Shown piece by piece: positions 36,562 to 51,867 of a stretch of DNA of 64,000 bases. The stretch's first letter is position 1, and every line of letters starts with the position of its first letter. Where the stretch lies: contig CAJFCJ010000011.1 in assembly GCA_904063045.1 (NCBI GenBank), positions 248,001 through 312,000 of the forward strand, given 5' to 3'. The notes under the pieces were generated by a model. It ran no database searches. It was not told where the DNA came from and worked only from the letters and a program-made list of their open reading frames with translations. Both the position numbers and the translations under genes were made by a program. This DNA is from Dimorphilus gyrociliatus. Its lineage: Eukaryota > Animalia > Annelida.

Positions 36562-36883
36562 TCAAATCTTATGAAAATTTTAAGATCGTGTTAGCTGTTT
36601 ATTTAGTCGATTTATTGTATTAACAACGTTAAATTCCGCCCGCTTTCCCCCCTATAAGCTATGGACACTGTATAGTAGTAGTGTATTTCTTCTCACGTGT
36701 TTCGAAAGAAATAAAGTAATTGACAAATACTTTAAAGGACTTTTTTATTTTAGAACCATCAGCTTCCGAGTATAAGACAGATATTTGGAATATTCTGCTA
36801 ACACTTTATGCTCTTTTCAACTTGTGATTTGGCGCAGATTTTTTATAAACTTGAGCGATAATTCGGTATATTACGCCGTAAAC

Positions 36884-39360
36884 ATGCAAGCATGTTTCTG
36901 TAGAAGTAGTTGTAACTCATTACAAGAAATTTTGTTGCCTCCAACGTTACTGGAACGTTTAGGGATCGAAATAGGCTCTCCAGGAAAGATAATTTTTAAT
37001 AGCGTTGAATTTTTAGGAACTTTATGGTCCAGAGAAGATTCTGCTAGTGTCATATGCATTCATGATTTGGTTAGAAAATCAACAAACGTTCATAAACTAT
37101 TGACTACACCGGATGAAACTCCCATACAAGAGAGTAATCTTACAGTTTTAAAGTCAGTGAAGATCACTAAAATATCTGTACGAGTTGTTTTCAAAACGAT
37201 CGAAGATGTTCTACCTTACATCTCGGTGGTAGGGAAACAAACGTTAGCTACTAGAGTACGAGGCATTTTATCAGATATTTATATCAGTGCTGGCTATACC
37301 ATTAAAGCTGCGGAATTGAAAATAAGCAGTTTACTAAGTATTCAATTTATAGATATTTTGACGTGTAATGCAAAGTCTGAGGAATCTGGGATTATAACCC
37401 AAAAAACCAATATACTTATTGACAGTATTATATCAGAAGATCAATACTTGCAATTGAGTAAAACCAAAACTAAGATAGGAGGCTTAAAGACCGAACGTTA
37501 TTTATTAGAAGATCTTGTAAGGCTTTGCAAGGAACGAGATAACTTTTTGCCTAAAACTGTTCTTCTAAAAGGTCCAAACGGCTGTGGAAAAACAATGTTA
37601 GTAGAAGAGGTTGCTAAAAGTTCCAAGAGTCAATTGATTAATACTTTAGCATCTTACTTGATTGGATCGCATCCTGGGGAAACAGAGGAGAATATTTGTG
37701 AAATTTTTCAAAGATCTTTAAAATATAGTGAATACACTGTTTGCATTTTATTAATTGAAGACATAGATTGTTTATTAATTGCTAGAGACAGTCAGAGTAG
37801 AAGATTTGTTTCATTGATTGATAGTCTAATGGAAAAAATTAGGCTAACATCTAATATACTATGTATTTGCACTACGTCGAAGGCAAATGAATTGGTCTAT
37901 CTACCAAAGTTCGATAAAGAGGTTCCATTTTAGATACAAATTTTAATATAGTAATGTTAATTTTTTATTGAACTTCAGATTTTGATTGGAATTCCTAGAT
38001 TGGAGGAGAGAATATCAATTATACAATCAATATCGGAAAGTAAAGGAATACATATGAATTCAGATTTACAATACTGGCTAGCCGAAAGAACTAATGGATA
38101 TTCTGGTGCAGATATTCAGAGTATATTAAACAGCTCTATAACCAAAGGAAGTTTGCAAGAGGCTCTCAATCGTTCAACACCAACAAGTCAAAAAGGTTCT
38201 GATGTTCTAACAGATTCAAGACCAATAAGTTGGAGTCAAATTGGAGGTTTACAAGAAATAAAGGAATCACTACAACAAATTATTGAATGGCCTATTAAAT
38301 TTAGAGACCGTTTTAGAAATTTTGGTGTAAAACCACCAGGGGGAATCCTTTTATATGGTCCTCCTGGCTGTGCAAAGACGCTCTTAGTTCGTGCAGCAGC
38401 AACCTCAGCAAATGTTACATTTTTATCTCTTTCAGCCGCCCAGTTATATTCACCATTTGTTGGAGATTCTGAGAAAAAATTAAGCGAGGTGAGCTATAAT
38501 TGGATACTTTTAAACTTCAAAAATTGCAAAAAGATTTTTCACTATGGTCTTCAAGGTATTTCACCAAGCTCGAGCAGGAGCACCCACCATTTTGTTTATA
38601 GATGAAATAGACGCCATAGTTGGAAGTCGAGATGCTGGTTCCAAGCAGAGCGCTCACGAAAGAGTTCTTTCAACATTATTAAACGAATTAGACGGTATTG
38701 GTATGAAGAGAGAGCAAATTCAACGTTCGGAGGAATCAAATGTAAAATATTTTAATGAATAATATTCAAATATATTGATATAAACAATCAAATTAAAATT
38801 TCTTTTGTTTCTAGTCATTAGAAAGAAGCGTTATTTTGGTGGCTGCTACTAACAGACCGAATAAAGTTGATAAAGCACTGTTAAGACCTGGTAGATTTGA
38901 TCGACTATTATACGTACCACCTCCAGACTATGAAGTAAACGTTCTTTAATAAGAAAATTTCTTAGAAATTAATAGATTAATTGAAAAATTTTAACTATAG
39001 GCTAGAAAGTCTATTTTGGAAATTCATACGAAGAAAATGAATTGTGAAAATGTAAATATAGAATTCTTGGCAGGTATGACGGAACTTTGTACTGGGGCCG
39101 ATCTAGAAAATCTATGTCTAGAGGTATCAAAACTTTCATTAGTTAATTGGAGACAAATTATAGTAAATTATCTCTTATTGGTTTTATTTTATTGAAAACA
39201 GGCAGCTCTAATGTGTTTAACTAAAGAAGGATCCGACGCCGATAAAGTTACTTTGGAATATTTTGAGAAAGCCCTGGAAAATGCTAGACGGTCGCTGACA
39301 CCAAAAGACATCGAGTTCTATAAGAACCTCGGACAGGCAGACAAGTGGGCCTCTTTTTAA
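36884..39360 (+). CDS. SPATA5L1: Double AAA+ ATPase SPATA5L1/AFG2B
   Basis: D1 GPNGCGKT. D2 [36 protein letters not shown] and [22 protein letters not shown]. Probable ATG at 36884; TAA at 39358-39360. Confidence 0.87.
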
Positions 39361-39845: not shown

Positions 39846-41634
39846 ATGCAACCGAAAACTTTACTGGAAATCTCTTCTCATTATTTTTTGGAAAATGTAG
39901 ATCATGTTCCGTTCTGGTTGGCTCTTACACCGAAAAAAGGTCTTCTTTACATATTTTCAAGCGATAAGTTCTCCGACCCAAAACCTTGCCATCTCCTAAT
40001 TTCAAAAATTGTCATTTCTGACGATTCTACTAGTGAAATTGCTTCTCAGAATGTGATTCCCTCTTCATCCGACCAAATTTCAATCTGGAGTTTGGAATGT
40101 TTAAGGTGTTTTAGGAGAGAAATTTGTTGGCCGTTAGCAGAGCGAATCATCGAGAAAAATTGGATATATTTGGTGTACAGTTTCAAGCAGAATGTAATCA
40201 AGAAGAATTTATTAATTCCTACTTTGGCTTACACTCTGGCGCTTCGAAAGCCGCGGTCATTTTACTACTTATATAGTAAAATTGTTGATAGGCTACAACG
40301 AAACACGTTTTCGAAAATATTCTCCCAAGTACTACTTTCCAATATGGACGATAAACTTGATTTGTTAGAGAAATTGATTAAGGTTGGAGATAAATTAAAG
40401 GAAAATTATAAAGATATGGAAATGGATTTAGTTAAGGCCTGTACCGTTAAAGGTGTAAAATTTGAGGACTTCCAAAGTGTTATGCTTATGAATCCTATTA
40501 CAAGAAATTTATCGCTTTGTTCCAATAGAATTATCCTTCATAGCTTCATGCAGGGTAACAATGAAATATTCTTATTTATGGCATCAAAATATCCAGAGAC
40601 TTTGGACTTGTTTGAAAGACCGGGTCATCACGTTCCATTCCTGCTCGGTACTTCTCCGGAAATTGCTGAATTCCTATGCTTAAATTCGATGAAAATGATT
40701 AATATGTTACATAGTTGGCTGTCTAGTCTCGAACATTCTGATTTCATTTCGGTTCAGAATATACTAAAGATGGATATTACAAATTTTTATCGAGTAAAGC
40801 CTATGATTGACTATTTTTCAAAGACCAAAGTCTTACAGCTATTTTACAATGTTTGGCATCGTAATCTAGAGAATCAATTACAGAAGAGAGGAAGAAATTT
40901 CTATCTCCCTTGCCTATTTGCAATTGTGAGATGTTTGGACGAGTATAATATGTCTGTACAAGATATCGGTAATAAATTCTGTGATCTATTTTTGCAACAA
41001 GAATCAGCAATGGGTGATATGGATTTCTGGTATCAAGATCTATGTCATTTTGCAGAGAAAGTAATATTCATACTTGTTAAGTATGGTTTTACGTTTTGCG
41101 GGAAGTTTCCCCCAATTAATGACCTATTTACACGTAATAATGTTTTTATTCATGAAATCGCTCAGTTCCTTAAACTTTTCTTTCTTTTCAGCGAGTAATT
41201 TACTAACTACTCTTCAAATTTTATATTTTACATCAAGCAACGAGCTGACAATTTCTACTCACTTCTTGCATAAGACTATTATGTCTGACGAACCGAGATC
41301 GCTCGTTAATCTCTCTGCAGTTGTTATTCGAAAGCATAAGACGAGAAGTATGAAAGAGCTACTCAAGAGGTTGGCTCTGCCTAAAGAGATAAATCGACAA
41401 ATTACAATGAAAGAACAATTGAAAAAGTTCAATACGGAGAATGAGAGAAAAGCGATAAGAGATGTAATGACAGGAATATTTATGGGTAGAACACACCAAA
41501 ATTGTTCCGATTTGAAAAGAGAGAACAACTACCTTTTACAAAACTTATTACAATCGCCAAGATGGGAAGGTTCCGAGGAAAATTCACCGGATATTTTACA
41601 AGAATACGAGGTGGACGATCACTTTGATTATTGA
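39846..41634 (+). CDS. Tandem family paralog A: N-terminal BC-box-like motif, helical core, C-terminal SOCS box; 2 exons
   Basis: QPKTLLEISSHYFL; CLRCFRREICWP; phase-1 intron near 41133-41191; EPRSLVNLSAVVIRK..LKRLALPKEINRQI. Confidence 0.8.
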
Positions 41635-42739
41635 TACGTATAATATAGAAGTTTAACATTCATAAGTAATTATTAATAATTATTGTAGGATTATCATTTA
41701 TTAAAAAAAAAAACAAAAAAAAAAGATTACTAGTAGTTTATTAATTTTTGTTTATGACTTTATTTTGTTTAGTGCTAATTTTGTATTGAAATATTTATGT
41801 TAAGTAAATTTTTCAAACGATGGCCATATTTTTTAAATAACGTTTTTTTTTTTCATTTTTCATGTCAAATTAGTATAGGAATTTTTCACTTTAAATAAAA
41901 TAAAGAATATTAAAGATATAAACAATGATTTGTTTTTTTTTTTTTTAAAAAAAGTAAAAAATTAAGAGAAATATTCATTTTTGAAAAATTAATGTAAAAA
42001 GTTTCTTTAATTTTCTATCGAGTTTCTTTGTCCTTTTCTTTTTTTAAATTTCATTTTATATTTTTATGTTGATAGGTTAGGATGTTAGCTTAAGGCACAA
42101 GTCGTGCTCCACAAATTATAAATATAGTTCGACCTTTAGAATATTATTTGACCCAGATTGTAGGCCGATGCTCTACAAAACAATCAACAAAGCTGATTGG
42201 TTTGAATATAACTTCCGGTTGATGGAATTGAGCAATGGCCGATAGACTCTAATTTTTAAAGTTAAAGGGATAATGTAACATAATAAAATTCTATTTAAAG
42301 TAGTATTCATTAATTTAATAAATTTTTTATTGATAAATAAGTTAATTGAATGAAAAAAATATCTATGATCATTACTCATAAGTCGAATGGTAGCAGCCAT
42401 TTTCCCTCTAGGTAGCACCACGTGGCTGTGTAAAAACTTGTCATTACTCGTCTTCAACTCTGTCAACCGTTGCCCAAGCTGGAACCAAGTTCCAATATTA
42501 GGGTAGTTTTTCTATTATCTTTTACTTTCAATGTATAAAATCTATTCAAGTAAGTATTTATAAAAGAATATTAACGTTTTAATAAATAGTACTCTGTTGA
42601 AAATTTTTGAAATATACAGGGGAAACTTGATAAAAAAAAAACGCCCTGCCAAAAGCAACCCGTTAACCATATACAGTATATTCACCGATGTGCCTTGGGT
42701 TTTATAGACCAAATAACTGAATATTAAAAAAAAAACGAT

Positions 42740-44637
42740 ATGCATTCTCCATTAAGTTTATTCGAATTATCGGCTAGTCGCTATTTGAAGTCTACCCAGT
42801 CTATTCCACTATCTATCGCTATTAGACCAAAAATAGGCCTTTTCCATTTATTCAGCGGAGACAAAGTGAAAGAGAGAAAATTTTTTGCCGAGCTTATTAA
42901 ACGGTCCACAGCAAGTCAATTAGCATTGGATGGACCTTTCAAATGGCGTGGCAGGAACTTTTCGCAAGATCATATTGGTTTTTTCAGACACGGAAAATGT
43001 TTAAAATGTTTTAGAATAAAAGTATGTTGGCCCATTGTCAGACGTCTAATAGATAAGGATTGGATCCATTTATTAAGGGAGTTTCAGTATTTAATTACTG
43101 ATCAAGACCTTATGGTCCCTTCATTGCTTTACGCCCTTGTTTGCAAAAAGTATAGTACATTTTTTTGCATTTATCGAGGGGTTGGAATATCGATTAGGTC
43201 GGAAAAGAATACATTGAATAAAGTTATTTCAAGTGTTATGAGATTGAAAAGACGCGATAAATTTACTCTGTTGACAAATTTATTTGAACTCTATAAAGAG
43301 ATGGTTCAAAGGGGAGATGAATTTAGTTGTTCAAATGTACTAAAAGCTTGTTCAGTTCGCGAAGTTCCCTTAAGCGATATATTACAATTGCCATTTTTGA
43401 GACACTACCTCGAAAGATTCCCAGAGAAAATGGCTCTTATTGCAATTGAGAATGGAAATTTCGAGTTTTTTTTTCATATTATTAGCAATCGACCCGAAGT
43501 AGAAGTATTACTAACTCAATCAAGAATATTAAAGTACTTTATAGCATCATCAGAAGATATAATTGAGTATATATATGAAACTAATCCAAGCATATTATCA
43601 ACATTAGAAAATTATATTAGAGACCGATTGGCAATACCTTCAAAATCCTATAGGTCTCTATTGGAGAAAGATTTACGAAATATATATAGATTAGAGATAT
43701 TTGCTAATTATTTCTCTAGAACAGATACACTTTATAAACTTGCTAGCATGTGGTTCTTGAATATGAAAAGACAATTAAAAACATTAAGGACGTTTTTTCT
43801 ATTTCCAACACTATTTACCATTTTGAAAAGTCTCGATAAATTTCGATTACCGGTTAAACCTATTGGAGATAAAATATGTTTATGGTTCTTCAAAAAGTTA
43901 GAATCGAACGAATCGACAAGGGAAATTGTTTATATTATTAATCAAGTTTTACCTATGTTAATTGAATTTGGCTATAGTTATAAAGGATTTTTACCGCAAA
44001 ACTTTGAAAGTAATATTTTAATTAATAATTTAACAATACGCAAAAAAAAACTTGTTTATTTTTTTTCTTAGATTGCACCTTTCCCGATACAATGGCGGTT
44101 TTCTATTATTTATCTGATTGTACTGTAAGATTTTCACCATCTTTTTTAAATCATATCAACTTAAGTGGACAGCCGCGATCTCTGATAACATTGAGCGTTG
44201 CCGCTATTAGAGGTATAAATAGGGGACGCTGGAGGGACTATGTTAAAGGGTTGACCGAGTCTCAAGTGCTTAGAGATCAAATTTTGATGGAAGATTTACC
44301 AGGTATCATATCGCCAACAAGAAGAATTGACTTGAAAGAATTCGAGGAAATTCATATGGAAAATATAACAATTTGTCAAAATGTACTTGGTGAAGCTGTC
44401 CTTGGCGATGAGCATAAGCATTGTATTAACGAAGAGATGTGTGGCCGAGACTATGAATTTCTTGTTGAATACATAAACGAGGACAGAGACTATTATGAAG
44501 AATATCCCTTTTTCGATCAATCCAACAGCTCTGATTCGGAAAGCTCTGATTCAGAGCTCGATAATCGTATAAATAGTTTGTTAAATTTTTATTTAAGTCA
44601 GGACGAATTTTGCCGTACCGAGAATATTCTCACATAA
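42740..44637 (+). CDS. Tandem family paralog B (BC-box-like N-terminus, SOCS-box-like C-terminus); 2 exons
   Basis: SPLSLFELSASRYL; CLKCFRIKVCWP; phase-1 intron near 44010-44071; QPRSLITLSVAAIRG; acidic tail. Confidence 0.8.
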
Positions 44638-45458
44638 AACAATTATGAATTTATTTTGCGTATTTACGTTTTATTTTGAAATTTACAAGAATGAATTAAT
44701 CCTTAAATTAATTACGTCTATTTTTGAATAATTCGTAAATTAATTAGAAAAATATAAAAATCTTAATAACTTATTTGTTGGTAAAAGAATACTGATTATA
44801 AGCAAGATGATTACTATTAATCTATTAATACAATAAGTATTGTATGAGTTAGTTTGTATTTTAGGTGGGAACGATACAACTGTCGTGTAATCTTTAACAT
44901 AATTAATTCACTCGTCTAGGTAGACAACTTGTAAAAATTATTACCAAGTTTTCTCTGAGGTCGTCAACTGTGATCGTTTCATACTGCATTCCTTAAAAAA
45001 CTCTATCAGCTTAATCTGCAGTCGGTTAATTAATCTCAAGATCCTCCTAAGGCTACTCTAAGCTATTATTTTAGCAATTGCTTTTATTTTTAAACGTAAA
45101 TTTACTAGTTCCTCTCGAACAACTGCGTTTACTAGCTGCCTCGCTGAATTTCTGTTACCATCCTAAATGATTTACCAGTTTTCTACGACTTGAATACGTA
45201 AGTATTTTCAAAAAAAAAAATGGGTTCGGAAGGAAGGTTTTTTTTATTATTAATGGTTATTGTCTTATTTCGCTTATTAATGGAAAAGTACTCTTAACTC
45301 TTCTTAATATTATTAATATGTTTATTTGTTAGAACCTCATCGATTTGCGAAGTAGAGCTAATATAAAGCTTAGAAAACTGCATTTATAATTATGCTACTA
45401 ATATATCTTTAACCGTCAGTATTGCTTCTATTTTATTTCTTACAGGTAATAATTCGAA

Positions 45459-47533
45459 ATGGCGTTCAACGAAGCAAATAAACCAATCATTTCAACACCG
45501 ATGACTCTACTGGAGTTGGCAACAGAAAGTTTTCTTCAGTCGTGCAACACTATAGCCTTCCCTCTTCTTTTACGGCCGAAAAATGGTTTATTAACGATAC
45601 TAACTGCTAAAAAGTTTAAAGAGCCAAGAAACTTTTGCAGAGCTTTGGCTAAAGCTCCGTCTCAGACTCATTTTAGAGAAGGACCAATAAGATGGAGCGG
45701 AAAAAGTTGTACTAGCTACGACGCTTCTTATCTTCGTAAACACTGCAAATGCCTAAAATGTTATAGAACGAAAATCTATTGGCCAATAATCAAACGATTA
45801 ATTGACAGAGGATGGCCGGATATGATTTGTTTTTTCAACTCTAGAATTTCTGATCAAAAATTACTTTTACCTTCTTTAGTTTATTGTTTAATTTCAAAAA
45901 ATTGGTATTGTTTTTATCAACTATTTAAGACTTATTGTTATGCTAGGAAAACACGAAGTAACAGTCTTACTGAATTATTCAGTCTTATTTTGAGAATGAA
46001 GAAAGATTATAAATTTGAGATGATTGACGACCTTTTGGAATTAGTTGATGAGCTGCAACACAATTACGATGGTATAAGATTTAGCATTATTAGAGCTTTG
46101 ACAGAACGTGATATTGCGTTAGATGATTTTATACGTGTTCCATCGATGTTTAGCAGTTTTCTCAACATCATTCCCAGCCTCAAAACTACGGCTATAAGTA
46201 GTTTTAAGAGAGGTAATTCGCAAATATTCTTCTACGCTTTAAAATCTCGTCCAAAATTGATTAAACTATTTTATAAAACAAAAAATCTCAAGTATTTTAT
46301 TGAAACATCTCCGGAAATTATAGAATTCTTTATCAATATTCATCCTGATCTTCTTACAAGACTTGACGATTGGTTATGCGGATTTAATCGTATTAAATAT
46401 AAAACTTCAATTCTGGAGAAAGACTTACGAAATCTGTATAAAGTTCAAATTTTTAAAGAGTTCTTTTCAAGAAGAGATACGACTTATAAACTATTTGATA
46501 TTTGGTTTAAAAATATGCAATCTATGCATTCAAAGAGAATGACTTCCGACTATTATTATCCTACTTTATACACTATTATTAAATGTATGGACCAATATGG
46601 TTTATCGGTAGAAGAGCCTGGTAATAGATTTTGTATTTGGTTCTTTGAACAAATAACGGAAACTAAAAGTACAATATTTTCATGGAGTAACGCTTATAAT
46701 GTAGCTGATAAGGTTTTACACATTTTTATTGAACATGGTTATGTTTTTACCGGTAATCTACCTACGAAAATTCACAGTACGCATAGTAAGTTGGTTGTAC
46801 TAATTTATCTATATTGTAAGCGTTAACCGATTAATATTATGAACCAATCCTCAATCTTTTAACAGGTTATGGCTTTCCAGAAGTACGAAAGATTTTCTAC
46901 TATTTGGCTAGCAATTCTGTGCCTTTTCCGCCTAGTTTTCTAAGTCAAATTCAAATGGTTGGTAAGCCAAGATCACTTACTAATTTGTGCGTAGCAGTGA
47001 TAAGACAATCGATTTCTGGTCCAATACGGAAAAAGGTAAATACACTTCCAGTTCCGGATGTTGTAAAGCGTCAAATGTTATTGGAGGACCATGATGATTG
47101 GATTTCCTTATTTAAAAGACTCGATCCTTTGGAATACCACGACAAACATCTTAGCGATAAAGAATTGTGCGACAGTTTCTTAGATAGCCAAGAAGTTGAC
47201 GACGATCATAAGAATTGCATCGACGTAACACTGAAAGATTACGAGGACAATTTCATCTTTCAGTATATGTACGAAGAAGGACCAAAATTTATTCCATTTA
47301 TCTTCTTTCAATTTGGAGGACAGGTAAACGGAGAGCAAATTAGAGGAGCTCAAATAAGCGAAAGCGAAGATGAAATAAATGATAGATTTCAACAAACATA
47401 TAATTCAGCAGGTGATGACGATGATGACGATGATGATGTTGATGATGACAATATCGATAATCAAGCTGGAAAATTTCAGGAAATAGAAGACAAAATGGAA
47501 GAAGATAACAACGAAAACGGTACAAGATTTTAA
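45459..47533 (+). CDS. Tandem family paralog C (BC-box-like N-terminus, canonical SOCS box, poly-Asp tail); 2 exons
   Basis: TPMTLLELATESFL; CKCLKCYRTKIYWP; phase-1 intron GTAAGT near 46786 to AG 46865; KPRSLTNLCVAVIRQSI..VNTLPVPDVVKRQMLL. Confidence 0.82.
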
Positions 47534-48545
47534 CGTAGATTTAAATATTTTAAAAGAGGAGAAAATTAAAATCTTATTATTCTTATTGACAAACATGTTA
47601 TTAAATATTTAATCAACTACAGAAATAGAACTTTAACAAACGTACTGAGATTATAGAGACAAGGTTAATTATTATTGCCAGCATAGTAAGAATGTGATAT
47701 AAATTGAATGATGATATGTATATAGTCCTATTCTCTTGTAATGATATACATGCAATTTACCTTTAATTATACTTTTTTCAGTTTTTATACATTTTTAACA
47801 GAATACAAAAGTCACTGCAAACATTCAAACATTCCATTGTTGTTATTTTTCTATAAATAGTTATAAGAGAAGAATGAGAAGAAGAAGAAGAAGAAGAGTA
47901 GATAAATAATAAAAAAGAGGTTAATTTATCAGTGTATTTTTAGAACAAATGATTTAAATTGTTTTGATTGATGTAAGTGTATTAGTGTGACTGTTTGACC
48001 AATAATAATAGTGAGGATTTTCTCTTTCTCCCATCACTCTGACACACACACTCTCTCTCTATCTATCTATCTCTTTCTCTTTAAAAAGAATAAAAATTAA
48101 TCTAAGTATAATTTTTAATATATTTATATAAATTTATATTATTTAAATATTCATAATTTCAATAATTTAAGATTCTAATTAAAATAGAGCGATAATGCGG
48201 TACTTGTAAAAAAAAAAACTAACTTTTTTTTTGTTAGCCATCGCTCATTATCACTCAAATATTACATTTGTCTACTTTTTATTGTTCTTGTTGGTTAGTA
48301 TAGATAAGTTAGAGTTGTTGTTTTTTTTTTCCTACTAAATGATCAAATTGATTGTTTTAATATAATATAGACTTTATTATAGATTAGTGATAATATTTAA
48401 ATAATACTTAGACATTATAAAAAAAGGTTTATTATTTATTAAAAAAAGAATGAATATTTCTTATAGATTTAATTGGTTGAGCGGAAATTATATTGAATTT
48501 GTTTAATCGGTTAATCTTTTTGAAAATTGGATATTGAAAGGTAAA

Positions 48546-50355
48546 ATGCCACAACCAATTAGTTTGTTAGAACAATCGGCTCAATGCTATTTGGATAATG
48601 CTAAAAGTATTCCATTTTGGTTGGCTCTCAAACCTAAAACTGGTTTACTATATATTTTTATGGATAAGAAATTCAAGGATTTAATTTATTGTTACGAAGC
48701 TATTTGGAAGTTGACACCACCGGAGGATAGTTGGGAGGAAATATCAACGCAGATGATTGGCGAGAATGATCATCCGTGGGATTATTTAGGCTGTTCTAGA
48801 TGTTTTAGGTTAAAGATTTGTTGGCCAATAACGAAGCGATTAATTGACAGAAATTGGATATTTCTCATAAATACGTTTACAGAACGAGTGACCAGGCAAA
48901 ATCTTTTAATTCCTTCGTTCGTTTACGCCCTAATGGAAAGGAAACATTGGTCTTTCTATTATATTTTCAAAAGGATAACTAATGAACAATCGGAGAATAC
49001 TTTAACCCAAGTTTTCACTCAAATACTAAACTCAAACCTAAAAGATAAATTCGAATTATTACACGAACTATTAAACGTTGAAGATAAACTACAAATTCAT
49101 AATAAAGGCTTAGAATTGGATATAATGAAAGCTTGTACAGAGCGCGATGTACGATTAGAAGATTTCAAAAGTGTCTTATCTCTAGGAGATTGTATAAGCG
49201 ACTCAACTTCTCATATTATTAGAATAGCTTTGAGTAGTTTCAGGCAAAGAAACGCTGAAATTTTTATATATATTTTGAATAAGCATCCAGAGATAATTCA
49301 AATATTCTTTGAAATTGAACAAGTTGAATTCCTTTTAAGTACAGCTTCAGAAATTATTGAATATCTACTGGATAAAAATCCAAATATAATTGCAGTTTTG
49401 GATTATTGGCTATCAAATGAAATAAAGAAATATGAATATGGTAATTACAATAATACAAACATATTAAAGAGAGATTTAAGGAATTTGTATAAAGTTCAAG
49501 TTTTAATCAGTTATTTTTCAAATAAGACTACTATATACGAATTATATGATATTTGGTTTGATAATGTTAGGAGGCAATTCGCAAAAACAAAGAGTAAAGG
49601 ATATTTCCTACCCTGTTTAGTTACTATAGTTAAATGTTTAGATAAATACGGTCTATCAATGGAAGAGCCTGGAAATAGATTCTGTTATTGGATTTTCAAG
49701 CAAAAATCTTCAATTGATAATATCGATTTTTGGCATTTAGATATCTGTTGTATAACTGAAAGAGTTTTATATACATTCCTTAAATATGGATATACATTTA
49801 CTGGAGATTTATCTATCTATTTCGAAGAGTTTTCATGTAATTTATCATTGTTTTTTTTTTTTTTTTGTTAAGAATATCTCTTATTGTTTTCTCTTCTTCC
49901 CTTTAGCCGGAGTTTTATTAAAAACTCTCTCAATATTCTATTACGCTTCGAGTAATACTATTCCTTTACCTGTGGATTTTTTGAAGGAAACTCTATCGAT
50001 TGTACAACCAAGATCGTTGATAAATTTAAGTGCTGTTGCGGTAAGGAGATTGAAATGTCAATCAATGAAAAAGTTTGTTAATTCTTTAAATCTTCCATCA
50101 AAAATAAATAATCAAATTCTACTTAAAGAACATTTAACGTTGTTCGACATAACTAGAAGGATAAATTTTGGAATATTTAATGAGAATTTTTCAAATGACC
50201 TAGAAACTATTAATAATCTCTTAAATGAAAGAGTTTTTGACGATAAGCACAATCATCACGATTCGTTCAACGGTAATGTATCTTCCGAATGCGATCTTTA
50301 TTATTCAAGCGACGAAGAGCAAACAAGACAATTCGAAAGTGAGGATGAAAATTGA
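48546..50355 (+). CDS. Tandem family paralog D (BC-box-like N-terminus, SOCS box); 2 exons
   Basis: QPISLLEQSAQCYL; CSRCFRLKICWP; phase-1 intron near 49838-49906; QPRSLINLSAVAVRRL..VNSLNLPSKINNQILL. Confidence 0.8.
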
Positions 50356-50673: not shown

Positions 50674-51867
50674 ATGTTTCTAAATGGAATGTCAGAGCAT
50701 CATAGACTGCTCTTCCTGGAGCAAGAAGTTAAAAAGATGAGACAACTTTCAGAGCGTTACAGATGTGAAGAGATGATTTCAAAGAAAAGGCTGGAAAAAC
50801 ATTTAAGAAGCATACGTAAATATTTTATTGGTTTCGAGCTAAAGATAAGGAAAGAATTGAACCTTACGTATCTTATGCAGACGAAAAGGATAGCCGAATA
50901 CACAACGTACATTCAAAGGCTATTAAAAACTCATCGTAGTCTCTATCCTGAAGAGAGATTCGAGATTGAACAGAGAATGATGCATATGAGACAGTCAATT
51001 AACGCAACAACTATATCGGTAAATTTGGTGGATCGTCACTTTGAAGCTCCCGCTTATCTTAATATTACAGAAAGGTATCAACCTTATTACAAGATTAAGC
51101 AGACAATGTTTCTTGGGGCTAATGATTTGAACAGTATTTCCGGTGTTCTTAGAATGGATGATAAATTACTATTGACAAAGGTATATGATAAAGAAACTAT
51201 TTTAGACGCTTACTCCCTGGATGGTGGCTACTTGAAAGAATTTTGGAAGGGACCCGTTCAAATAACTTCTATTATAACCGATTATAGGCAGTTTTACGTT
51301 TACGCTGCTTTCTATTGTAAAAACTTAATCTGTAGAGCCATTGTTCATGGTAATAGCTACCATTTTTATCCTTGGGTAATGATTACTAAACCACAAGAGG
51401 TGCTTAATTGCGGAGTTGACGATCTACTCTGTTGGTATAACAAAAATGTAATATGTAGATTAAACGTAAATGGAGAGAAACTATGGAGTTTGAAAGTTGA
51501 TGGTCTTAAAGGTATCTGCTCGTTCAACCTGCCAAGAATTCATTTGTTTTATACGTATCATCATAAGAGTATCGTTTTAAGAGATGCTAATAAGAAGGGT
51601 AGAAGGATATTTCGCCGTAGATTTCAAGGTTCAAAAACTTTTACCGGAATGACTGCAAGTACATTTGGTTTAATGATTTCTGAACCAAAGAAGGCGGAGA
51701 TTCAGATAATGGATCCGGAGACGTTACAATTGGTAGCGAAATTACCAACAACAGATAGACCTTGTAAATTACATTCATATTGCGATGGTTTCCAATTTGT
51801 TATCTACGCAATACTATACGACCATGAAAGAAACCTTAAAAAGCTATCGATATTACATTACGAATAG
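50674..51867 (+). CDS. Intronless coiled-coil + degenerate NHL-like beta-propeller protein (TRIM-like, no RING)
   Basis: 397-aa ORF with a helical N-third. It shares YSLDG.YL and ICS..LP motifs with the RING gene at 56024. Confidence 0.6.
   Translation: MFLNGMSEHHRLLFLEQEVKKMRQLSERYRCEEMISKKRLEKHLRSIRKYFIGFELKIRKELNLTYLMQTKRIAEYTTYIQRLLKTHRSLYPEERFEIEQRMMHMRQSINATTISVNLVDRHFEAPAYLNITERYQPYYKIKQTMFLGANDLNSISGVLRMDDKLLLTKVYDKETILDAYSLDGGYLKEFWKGPVQITSIITDYRQFYVYAAFYCKNLICRAIVHGNSYHFYPWVMITKPQEVLNCGVDDLLCWYNKNVICRLNVNGEKLWSLKVDGLKGICSFNLPRIHLFYTYHHKSIVLRDANKKGRRIFRRRFQGSKTFTGMTASTFGLMISEPKKAEIQIMDPETLQLVAKLPTTDRPCKLHSYCDGFQFVIYAILYDHERNLKKLSILHYE

Follow-up and report, generated by a model that had tools for sequence, protein, structure and literature searches.

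Four same-strand genes in a 64,000-nucleotide stretch of the Dimorphilus gyrociliatus genome (contig C11, positions 248001–312000, G+C content ~31%; hereafter the window) probably encode SOCS-box substrate receptors of a cullin-5 (Cul5) RING ubiquitin ligase. Each of these genes, which we refer to as A (39846–41634), B (42740–44637), C (45459–47533), and D (48546–50355), comprises two exons on the plus strand, the first specifying a helical-repeat core and the second a SOCS box followed by an acidic tail. Our confidence in the assignment derives from the established behaviour of SOCS boxes.

A tandem array of SOCS-box genes

The four genes, delimited as pairs of open reading frames (ORFs), lie in register-preserving DNA repeats with start-to-start distances of 2897, 2755, and 3051 nt. 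Searching the window with the product of each exon by tblastn returned exactly four copies, among which pairwise identity is 27–41% for exon 1 (E 1e-51 to 1e-106) and 23–44% for exon 2. An earlier note on this DNA had described four same-strand genes, each with one phase-1 intron at the equivalent position, and both the coordinates and the splice junctions, which we read from the sequence, confirm that description: every copy contains a single GT..AG intron of 58–80 nt in phase 1, a few codons past a conserved G(Y/F)xFxG block. These lengths agree with the published median intron of 66 bp in D. gyrociliatus (PMC7854359). Alignment also recovered the sequence blocks that had been listed for the family, with PxS/TLL/FExS/A, PKxGL, CxxC(F/Y)RxxxxWP, LxxPS/T, LxxD(L/I)xNxY, and a GN(R/K)FC-like block in all four copies, and with the motif PRSLxxL(S/C)xxx(I/V)R in exon 2.

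Exon 1 of gene A (39846–41133, ~429 codons, specifying the N-terminal motif and the helical-repeat core; ORF and alignment), whose product is 81% identical to the orthologue P0004, ends at a donor GT at 41134; it is followed by a 58-nt intron (41134–41191), with which the frame arithmetic agrees, and by exon 2 (41192–41634, stop codon included), which specifies a linker, the SOCS box, and the tail. Exon 1 of gene B (42740–44009) and exon 1 of gene C (45459–46785; 72% identity to the orthologue P0003) are each defined by ORF, alignment, and tblastn, and are separated from the second exons (44072–44637 and 46866–47533) by introns of 62 nt (44010–44071) and 80 nt (46786–46865), respectively. Gene D consists of exon 1 at 48546–49836, a 70-nt intron (49837–49906), and exon 2 at 49907–50355. 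The product of its first exon is 100% identical to the database protein DgyrCDS8367 (P0001, 579 residues), the sole match in a word-index protein search, and the splice in P0001 is exactly the one we had inferred from the sequence, confirming the gene D intron.

Six-frame searches of the whole genome with the core of D, and then with a profile built from nine sequences, gave an identical set of nine loci, of which four lie on C11, two in tandem on contig C3, two on C9, and one on C26. L005 (G000:C3:2772665-2776969) and L006 (G000:C9:377588-381877) are intronless, since the core and the SOCS box lie together in one open frame (590 and 537 codons, respectively). L008 and L009 carry a phase-1 intron and L007 (G000:C3:2769641-2773681) a phase-2 intron at about the same place. 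Introns thus seem to have been lost or to have slid within the family. The exon products of A, B, and C were searched separately, and full-length work was performed with P0001 and the intronless L005 and L006.

The exon-2 product of gene C passes the Pfam SOCS_box model (PF07525) with 25.6 bits against a gathering cut-off of 23.5, and in a six-frame scan of the genome both C (28.3 bits) and L005 (28.5 bits) pass. At E<=1 the model matches the exon-2 products of six of the nine members (best 5.3e-6); A, B, and D singly fall under the cut-off, yet are clearly homologous to C. Alignment with hhalign placed the family motif (K/Q)PRSLxxLSxxxIR...LxΦP in exact register with the SOCS boxes of an ankyrin-SOCS gene (L024) and an SH2-SOCS gene (L026) of the same genome, and a local exon-2 profile matched 14 of 25 open frames from other SOCS-box loci (E<=0.02). 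Among solved SOCS-box proteins, ASB7 and ASB8 are the only weak sequence matches. The box occupies approximately 41293–41418 in A, 44173–44298 in B, 46967–47092 in C, and 50008–50133 in D. Its BC box, (S/T/P)-L-x-x-x-(C/S/A)-x-x-x-hydrophobic (SLVNLSAVVI in A), is present in all four window copies and in 7/9 family members, with the leucine invariant in 9/9. At the position of the Cul5 box, C and L005 carry the canonical LPVP and LPIP, and A, D, L006, L007, L008, and L009 carry L-x-(L/I/V)-P. The SOCS box is also the best-conserved stretch among the paralogues, with a mean pairwise identity of 0.41 for the BC box and 0.34 for its 40 columns, compared with 0.245 for the core. By these sequence comparisons the exon-2 motif is a genuine SOCS box, as the earlier note had proposed. 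Weak matches of exon 2 to the giant-virus FNIP-repeat proteins Crov539 and Crov588, at 0–3 bits per repeat, were set aside as chance.

A protein of this construction would be expected to act as follows. The BC box in exon 2, (S/T/P)LxxL(S/C/A)xxx(I/V), would dock Elongin B/C, and the L-x-(L/I/V)-P element ~14 residues past it would dock Cul5–Rbx2. The solenoid of ~430 residues encoded by exon 1 would bind a target specific to the paralogue, which would then be ubiquitylated; this solenoid probably consists of ankyrin repeats that have diverged beyond the reach of standard models. The acidic tail might regulate assembly or mimic a substrate, although this is a guess. The genome encodes the corresponding partners, as we found two Elongin C loci, L016 (G000:C7:4250133-4250234, minus strand) and L017 (G000:C9:2345401-2345505, plus strand), each of which aligns in its first coding stretch with residues 7–51 of human Elongin C (E ~1e-20), as well as Cul2, Cul3, and Cul5 and two Skp1 loci (L014 and L015). 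We note that duplicated adaptor subunits (two Elongin C and two Skp1 loci) have seemingly been kept in a compact genome.

The repeat core and its possible relation to ankyrin repeats

AlphaFold2, supplied with an alignment of the paralogues, models the ~430-residue core encoded by exon 1 as an all-helical solenoid. For full-length P0001 the mean predicted local distance difference test score (pLDDT) is 73 and the predicted template modelling score (pTM) is 0.68; for residues 79–430, modelled with 14 sequences, these values are 86 and 0.81. Searching the Protein Data Bank with the full and core models using Foldseek gave no match at E<=1e-3, and the weak rows are of the armadillo (ARM)/importin type with TM <=0.3. 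A core profile searched against the sequences of solved structures found nothing under E 0.25. Comparison of both models with 48,161 chains by VIA-align gave best Z scores of 9.6 (importin-9) and 9.0 (She4), which lie in the noise range for helical repeats, with the ARM repeats of ZYG11B at 7.7 and ASB8 at 6.6. As modelled, the core is thus a generic, irregular solenoid without a decisive structural relative.

Sequence profiles give a more specific indication, and on their strength we lean towards an origin of the core within the ASB-like (ankyrin plus SOCS box) lineage, of which it would be a very derived branch. When 1.84 billion representative proteins were searched exhaustively with the core profile (A3) in HMMER, 21 matched. 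Ten of these are members of the family, being either Dimorphilus proteins or proteins 48–81% identical to individual Dimorphilus paralogues (tblastn), and the other matches are ankyrin-repeat proteins in 11 of 11 cases (Pfam Ank E 1e-19 to 0), with full-sequence E-values against the core profile of 2e-27 to 1e-3. Reversed and shuffled versions of these ankyrin proteins gave zero matches when the search was rerun locally. The matches fall on positions 120–300 of the family profile and peak at 241–300; in gene D the ankyrin-like central repeats comprise approximately residues 165–300 (49038–49445), with an equivalent stretch in A, B, and C. With one of the ankyrin proteins, P0021, hhalign gave a probability of 88% (E 2.8e-6) over columns 242–299, an alignment that covers two consecutive repeats bearing the signature G(N/H)-x-E-(I/V)-x-x-Y-L ~33 residues apart. 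The ESM Atlas clusters nearest to P0001 are SOCS-box, ASB17, ANKRD9, and ankyrin clusters, with scores of 0.84–0.92.

The other SOCS-box genes of the genome bear on the same question. A six-frame Pfam scan found at least 36 SOCS-box loci, and of 20 others that we sampled 12 encode ankyrin repeats plus a SOCS box, which is the commonest architecture in the sample, one SH2 plus SOCS, and two a beta-propeller plus SOCS. Because ankyrin plus SOCS accounts for 12 of the 20 sampled loci, a derived ASB origin is the economical reading. For the remaining five (L023, L027, L035, L036, and L042) Pfam at E<=1e-3 reports no domain apart from, at most, the SOCS box; their frames span 232–440 codons and lie on contigs C20, C7, C9, C18, and C7, respectively, and they add to the unassigned receptor cores of the genome.

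Several observations weigh against ankyrin ancestry. No Pfam family, and so no Pfam ankyrin model, matches any of the nine cores (9/9) even at E<=10. A hidden Markov model of ankyrin repeats built from ASB genes of this genome does not score the family above reversed controls, and between the core and a canonical local ASB hhalign gave a probability of 0.4%. The scores of the 11 ankyrin proteins are sums of weak per-repeat scores, the best single stretch contributing 8–22 bits, and near-identical repeats can inflate such sums. The structural matches are weak and to generic solenoids of the ARM, importin, and UCS kinds in both Foldseek and VIA-align; ankyrin rows in VIA-align (MIB1, RNase L, espin, Notch, and TRPV2) reach only Z 6.4–7.8 with root-mean-square deviations (rmsd) of 5–13 Å over up to 273 residues, and the alignments of 255–273 residues have rmsd 9–13 Å and Z 7.1–7.8; the ARM and importin rows score as high or higher. 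The internal periodicity of the core is weak (lags 31–35, z ~2). Besides SOCS_box, the only Pfam matches of exon products or P0001, to IBV_3A, Imm70, and GBBH-like_N, were rejected as noise.

The core could instead be a helical-repeat domain of independent, non-ankyrin origin that became joined to a SOCS box, in which case the family would form a new class of receptor beside ASB, SPSB, WSB, and SOCS proteins. The failure of Pfam and local ankyrin models, the ARM, importin, and UCS character of the best structural rows (none of them significant), and the confinement of the ankyrin-like signal to ~130 of 430 core residues with little periodicity are all in keeping with such an origin. Nevertheless, a search of 1.84 billion proteins that yields ankyrin proteins in every one of its 11 outside matches, and no TPR, HEAT, ARM, or PPR protein, the run of two 33-residue repeats with their GN/GH-x-E-I/V-x-x-Y-L signature in P0021, and the dominance of ankyrin plus SOCS among local architectures render an independent origin possible but rather doubtful. 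The earlier note had recognised no ankyrin, SH2, WD40, or SPRY domain in the core and had proposed a new adaptor family. As far as Pfam is concerned the first of these statements stands (0/9 cores match), but the proposal of a non-ankyrin, new adaptor family finds no support in profile matches that outside the family are to ankyrin proteins only, in a genome where ankyrin plus SOCS is the commonest SOCS-box architecture.

When the core profile was compared with the 25 open frames from other SOCS-box loci, we found no link except a borderline one to L040 (G000:C7:3926500-3929000, minus strand). L040 contains a 550-codon frame (L040:245-1894) in which a weak SOCS box (24.1 bits) is the sole Pfam domain, and aligns with the family core over 121 columns with an hhalign probability of 56% (E 1e-4). 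As a possible tenth, distant relative it may connect the family with other orphan SOCS-box genes.

Conservation of the family and the state of its SOCS boxes

The members of the family found outside Dimorphilus come from assemblies of runs SRR23372216, SRR23372228, and SRR23372229, which derive from a related worm. Neither the word-index protein search nor the profile search of 1.84 billion proteins detected orthologues beyond Dimorphilus and this one related worm, and we did not find the family in the literature; the text of the genome paper (PMC7854359) has no match for ankyrin, SOCS, or ubiquitin. The nine genes therefore most likely constitute a strongly diverged family restricted to dinophilids, to judge from these searches, and the description of the array as a lineage-specific, diverged set of probable cullin-RING substrate receptors holds.

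Maximum-likelihood analysis joins each of A, C, D, L007, and L009 to its counterpart from the related worm with support of 94–100 and makes A and D sisters. Because the orthologues pair one to one, the duplications predate the split of the two worms. Gene order has also been kept: in the related worm an AAA-ATPase gene and A lie on L013, and B, C, D, and a TRIM-NHL-like gene lie on L010. In the window the AAA-ATPase gene, which has several exons (36785–38762), adjoins gene A upstream, and its counterpart in L013 carries Pfam AAA and AAA_lid_3 domains; downstream, a 397-codon TRIM-NHL-like ORF (50674–51867) adjoins gene D. The counterpart of B (L010:71-1936, SRR23372228) matches in a succession of four frames across exon 1 and of three across exon 2, and alongside it on L010 the counterparts of C and D are intact. 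Gene B has probably decayed to a pseudogene in the related worm.

Purifying selection acts on the family, whose rate of evolution does not exceed that of the neighbouring genes. For the orthologue pairs of A, C, and D the proportion of synonymous differences (pS) is 0.74–0.81, which is saturated, and nonsynonymous divergence (dN) is 0.10–0.21 in exon 1 and 0.12–0.35 in exon 2 (nonsynonymous and synonymous differences were counted by hand for two taxa). For the flanking genes dN is 0.16–0.27 in the AAA-ATPase ORFs and 0.42 in the TRIM-NHL-like gene, which is 48% identical to its counterpart beside D. Identity between orthologues is fairly even along the core, at 0.55–0.82 per 20 residues. We take the one-to-one orthologues with support of 94–100%, the conserved gene order, and a dN of 0.10–0.35 set against saturated pS as evidence that the genes are functional. 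The pattern lends no support to the suggestion, made in the earlier note, that these are genes of host–pathogen conflict, as a dN of 0.10–0.35 is not above that of the flanking genes in this gene-wide comparison of two taxa with saturated synonymous sites. Strong divergence among paralogues together with purifying selection within orthologue pairs suggests, rather, that each copy has its own fixed target. The TRIM-NHL-like ORF, for its part, evolves faster than the SOCS-box genes.

Two features of the SOCS boxes sit uneasily with a role in Cul5 recruitment. Gene B has kept its BC box but has lost the Cul5 box, carrying LTES instead of L-x-hydrophobic-P, and in all four window copies the box is internal, with 71, 112, 146, and 73 residues following it in A, B, C, and D, respectively. 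The tails (A 41419–41631, B 44299–44634, C 47093–47530, and D 50134–50352, all on the plus strand) are acidic, with net charges of -5, -19, -32, and -12, and in P0001 AlphaFold models the tail of D as disordered (pLDDT below 50). In the other SOCS-box genes that we sampled, the box ends within ~10 residues of the end of the frame. The blocks (K/R)R(I/L)D and DxHxNC are common to the tails of most paralogues, and in the tails we recognised no known motif.

These features could mean that the SOCS box is vestigial, so that the proteins serve as ligase-independent scaffolds or inhibitors, or that some copies are decaying. The missing L-x-hydrophobic-P in B, the several frameshifts in its orthologue, the long acidic tail behind an internal box, and the three of nine copies that miss the Pfam model at E<=1 would all accord with such a loss. 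We nonetheless consider it improbable for the family as a whole, as the SOCS box is conserved among paralogues at 0.34–0.41 against 0.245, all nine Dimorphilus copies are open frames, and the orthologue comparisons indicate strong purifying selection.

The N-terminal helix and comparison with known receptors

The earlier note had also proposed a second BC box at the N-terminus of these proteins. In gene D the stretch in question is PISLLEQSAQCYL (48555–48593), with equivalents at 39852–39890 in A, 42749–42787 in B, and 45498–45536 in C. In 7/9 paralogues, and at the same place, the N-terminal motif, P-x-(S/T)-L-(L/F)-E-x-(S/A)-x-x-x-(F/Y)-L, agrees with a loose BC-box pattern, [STP]Lxxx[CSA]xxxΦ, as often as the true BC box does; other open frames of the window yield the pattern 1.16 times per 1000 residues, and the motif is kept in the orthologues of A, C, and D. 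Were this helix a second, PRAME/ZYG11-type BC box, the proteins might each bind a pair of Elongin BC modules or alternate between Cul2 and Cul5, and the genome does encode Cul2, Cul5, and two Elongin C loci. The pattern, however, also fits ordinary helix-1 motifs of ankyrin repeats in local ASB genes (PLHLACKLGY, for example), and it is absent from L006, L009, and the related-worm counterparts of L007 and L009, all of which have good SOCS boxes. Among paralogues the identity of the N-terminal 10-mer is 0.27, near the core mean of 0.245 and below the 0.41 of the true BC box, and between orthologues the first 20 residues are 0.55 identical, the low end of the range. A profile of the N-terminus (12 sequences, first 60 residues) found no match at E<=10 among solved chains, the Elongin C-binding proteins of that library included, and it aligned neither to the family's own BC box nor to the other SOCS-box genes of the genome. 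A second BC box, for which we find only a loose pattern of average conservation, is thus very unlikely.

In the AlphaFold model of D the motif forms a helix at residues 7–18 (pLDDT 76–90), and VIA-align aligns residues 2–192 as one solenoid to TOG and TRPV2-ankyrin domains. Since residues 2–192 form one continuous solenoid in the model, the N-terminal motif is probably the first, capping helix of the repeat domain. Least likely of all is a combination in which a non-ankyrin solenoid, an N-terminal second element that binds Elongin C or directs the protein to Cul2, and an internal SOCS box whose tail regulates ligase assembly occur jointly; if true, one adaptor could bridge or switch between two Elongin BC–cullin modules.

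The family can be compared with three groups of known proteins. Like ASB proteins, its members combine a helical-repeat domain that would bind the target with a SOCS box composed of a BC box and an LPxP-like Cul5 box; their central repeats bear an ankyrin-like signature, their ESM Atlas neighbours include ASB17- and ANKRD9-like clusters, and ASB8 is the only SOCS-box protein in the top 50 rows of VIA-align for the full model (Z 6.6). Unlike ASB proteins, they have a core that ankyrin models do not recognise and that is modelled as an irregular solenoid, a SOCS box beyond which the chain continues into an acidic, partly conserved tail of 71–146 residues, and family-specific N-terminal and CxxCFRxxxxWP blocks. 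With the cullin-2 RING ligase receptors PRAME, ZYG11, and ZER1 they have in common that a repeat domain, helical or leucine-rich, is preceded by an N-terminal helix that reads S/T-L-x-x-x-S/A/C-x-x-x-hydrophobic, a presumed likeness in the case of the PRAME N-terminus, and the ARM region of ZYG11B is among the weak structural rows, within the noise range for helical repeats (Z 7.7). Those receptors, in contrast, have no SOCS box, whereas the Dimorphilus proteins have a genuine C-terminal one and an N-terminal profile that matches no solved chain. Rab40 resembles this family in having additional sequence C-terminal to its SOCS box, but it combines a GTPase domain with a prenylated tail, unlike the acidic tail seen here, which is predicted to be disordered (pLDDT below 50).

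Taken together, our analyses place the family with the ordinary kind of SOCS-box ligase adaptor, probably derived from ASB proteins, in an unusually diverged and lineage-restricted form, within a genome whose noted features are otherwise its compaction and its losses of genes (PMC7854359). A solenoid that is modelled with confidence yet has no match, a SOCS box inside the chain, and an acidic tail that has been conserved are modest oddities, and none of them overturns current knowledge. Nine proteins of D. gyrociliatus that have so far been "uncharacterised" can be labelled as SOCS-box proteins and probable receptors of the cullin-5 RING ligase.

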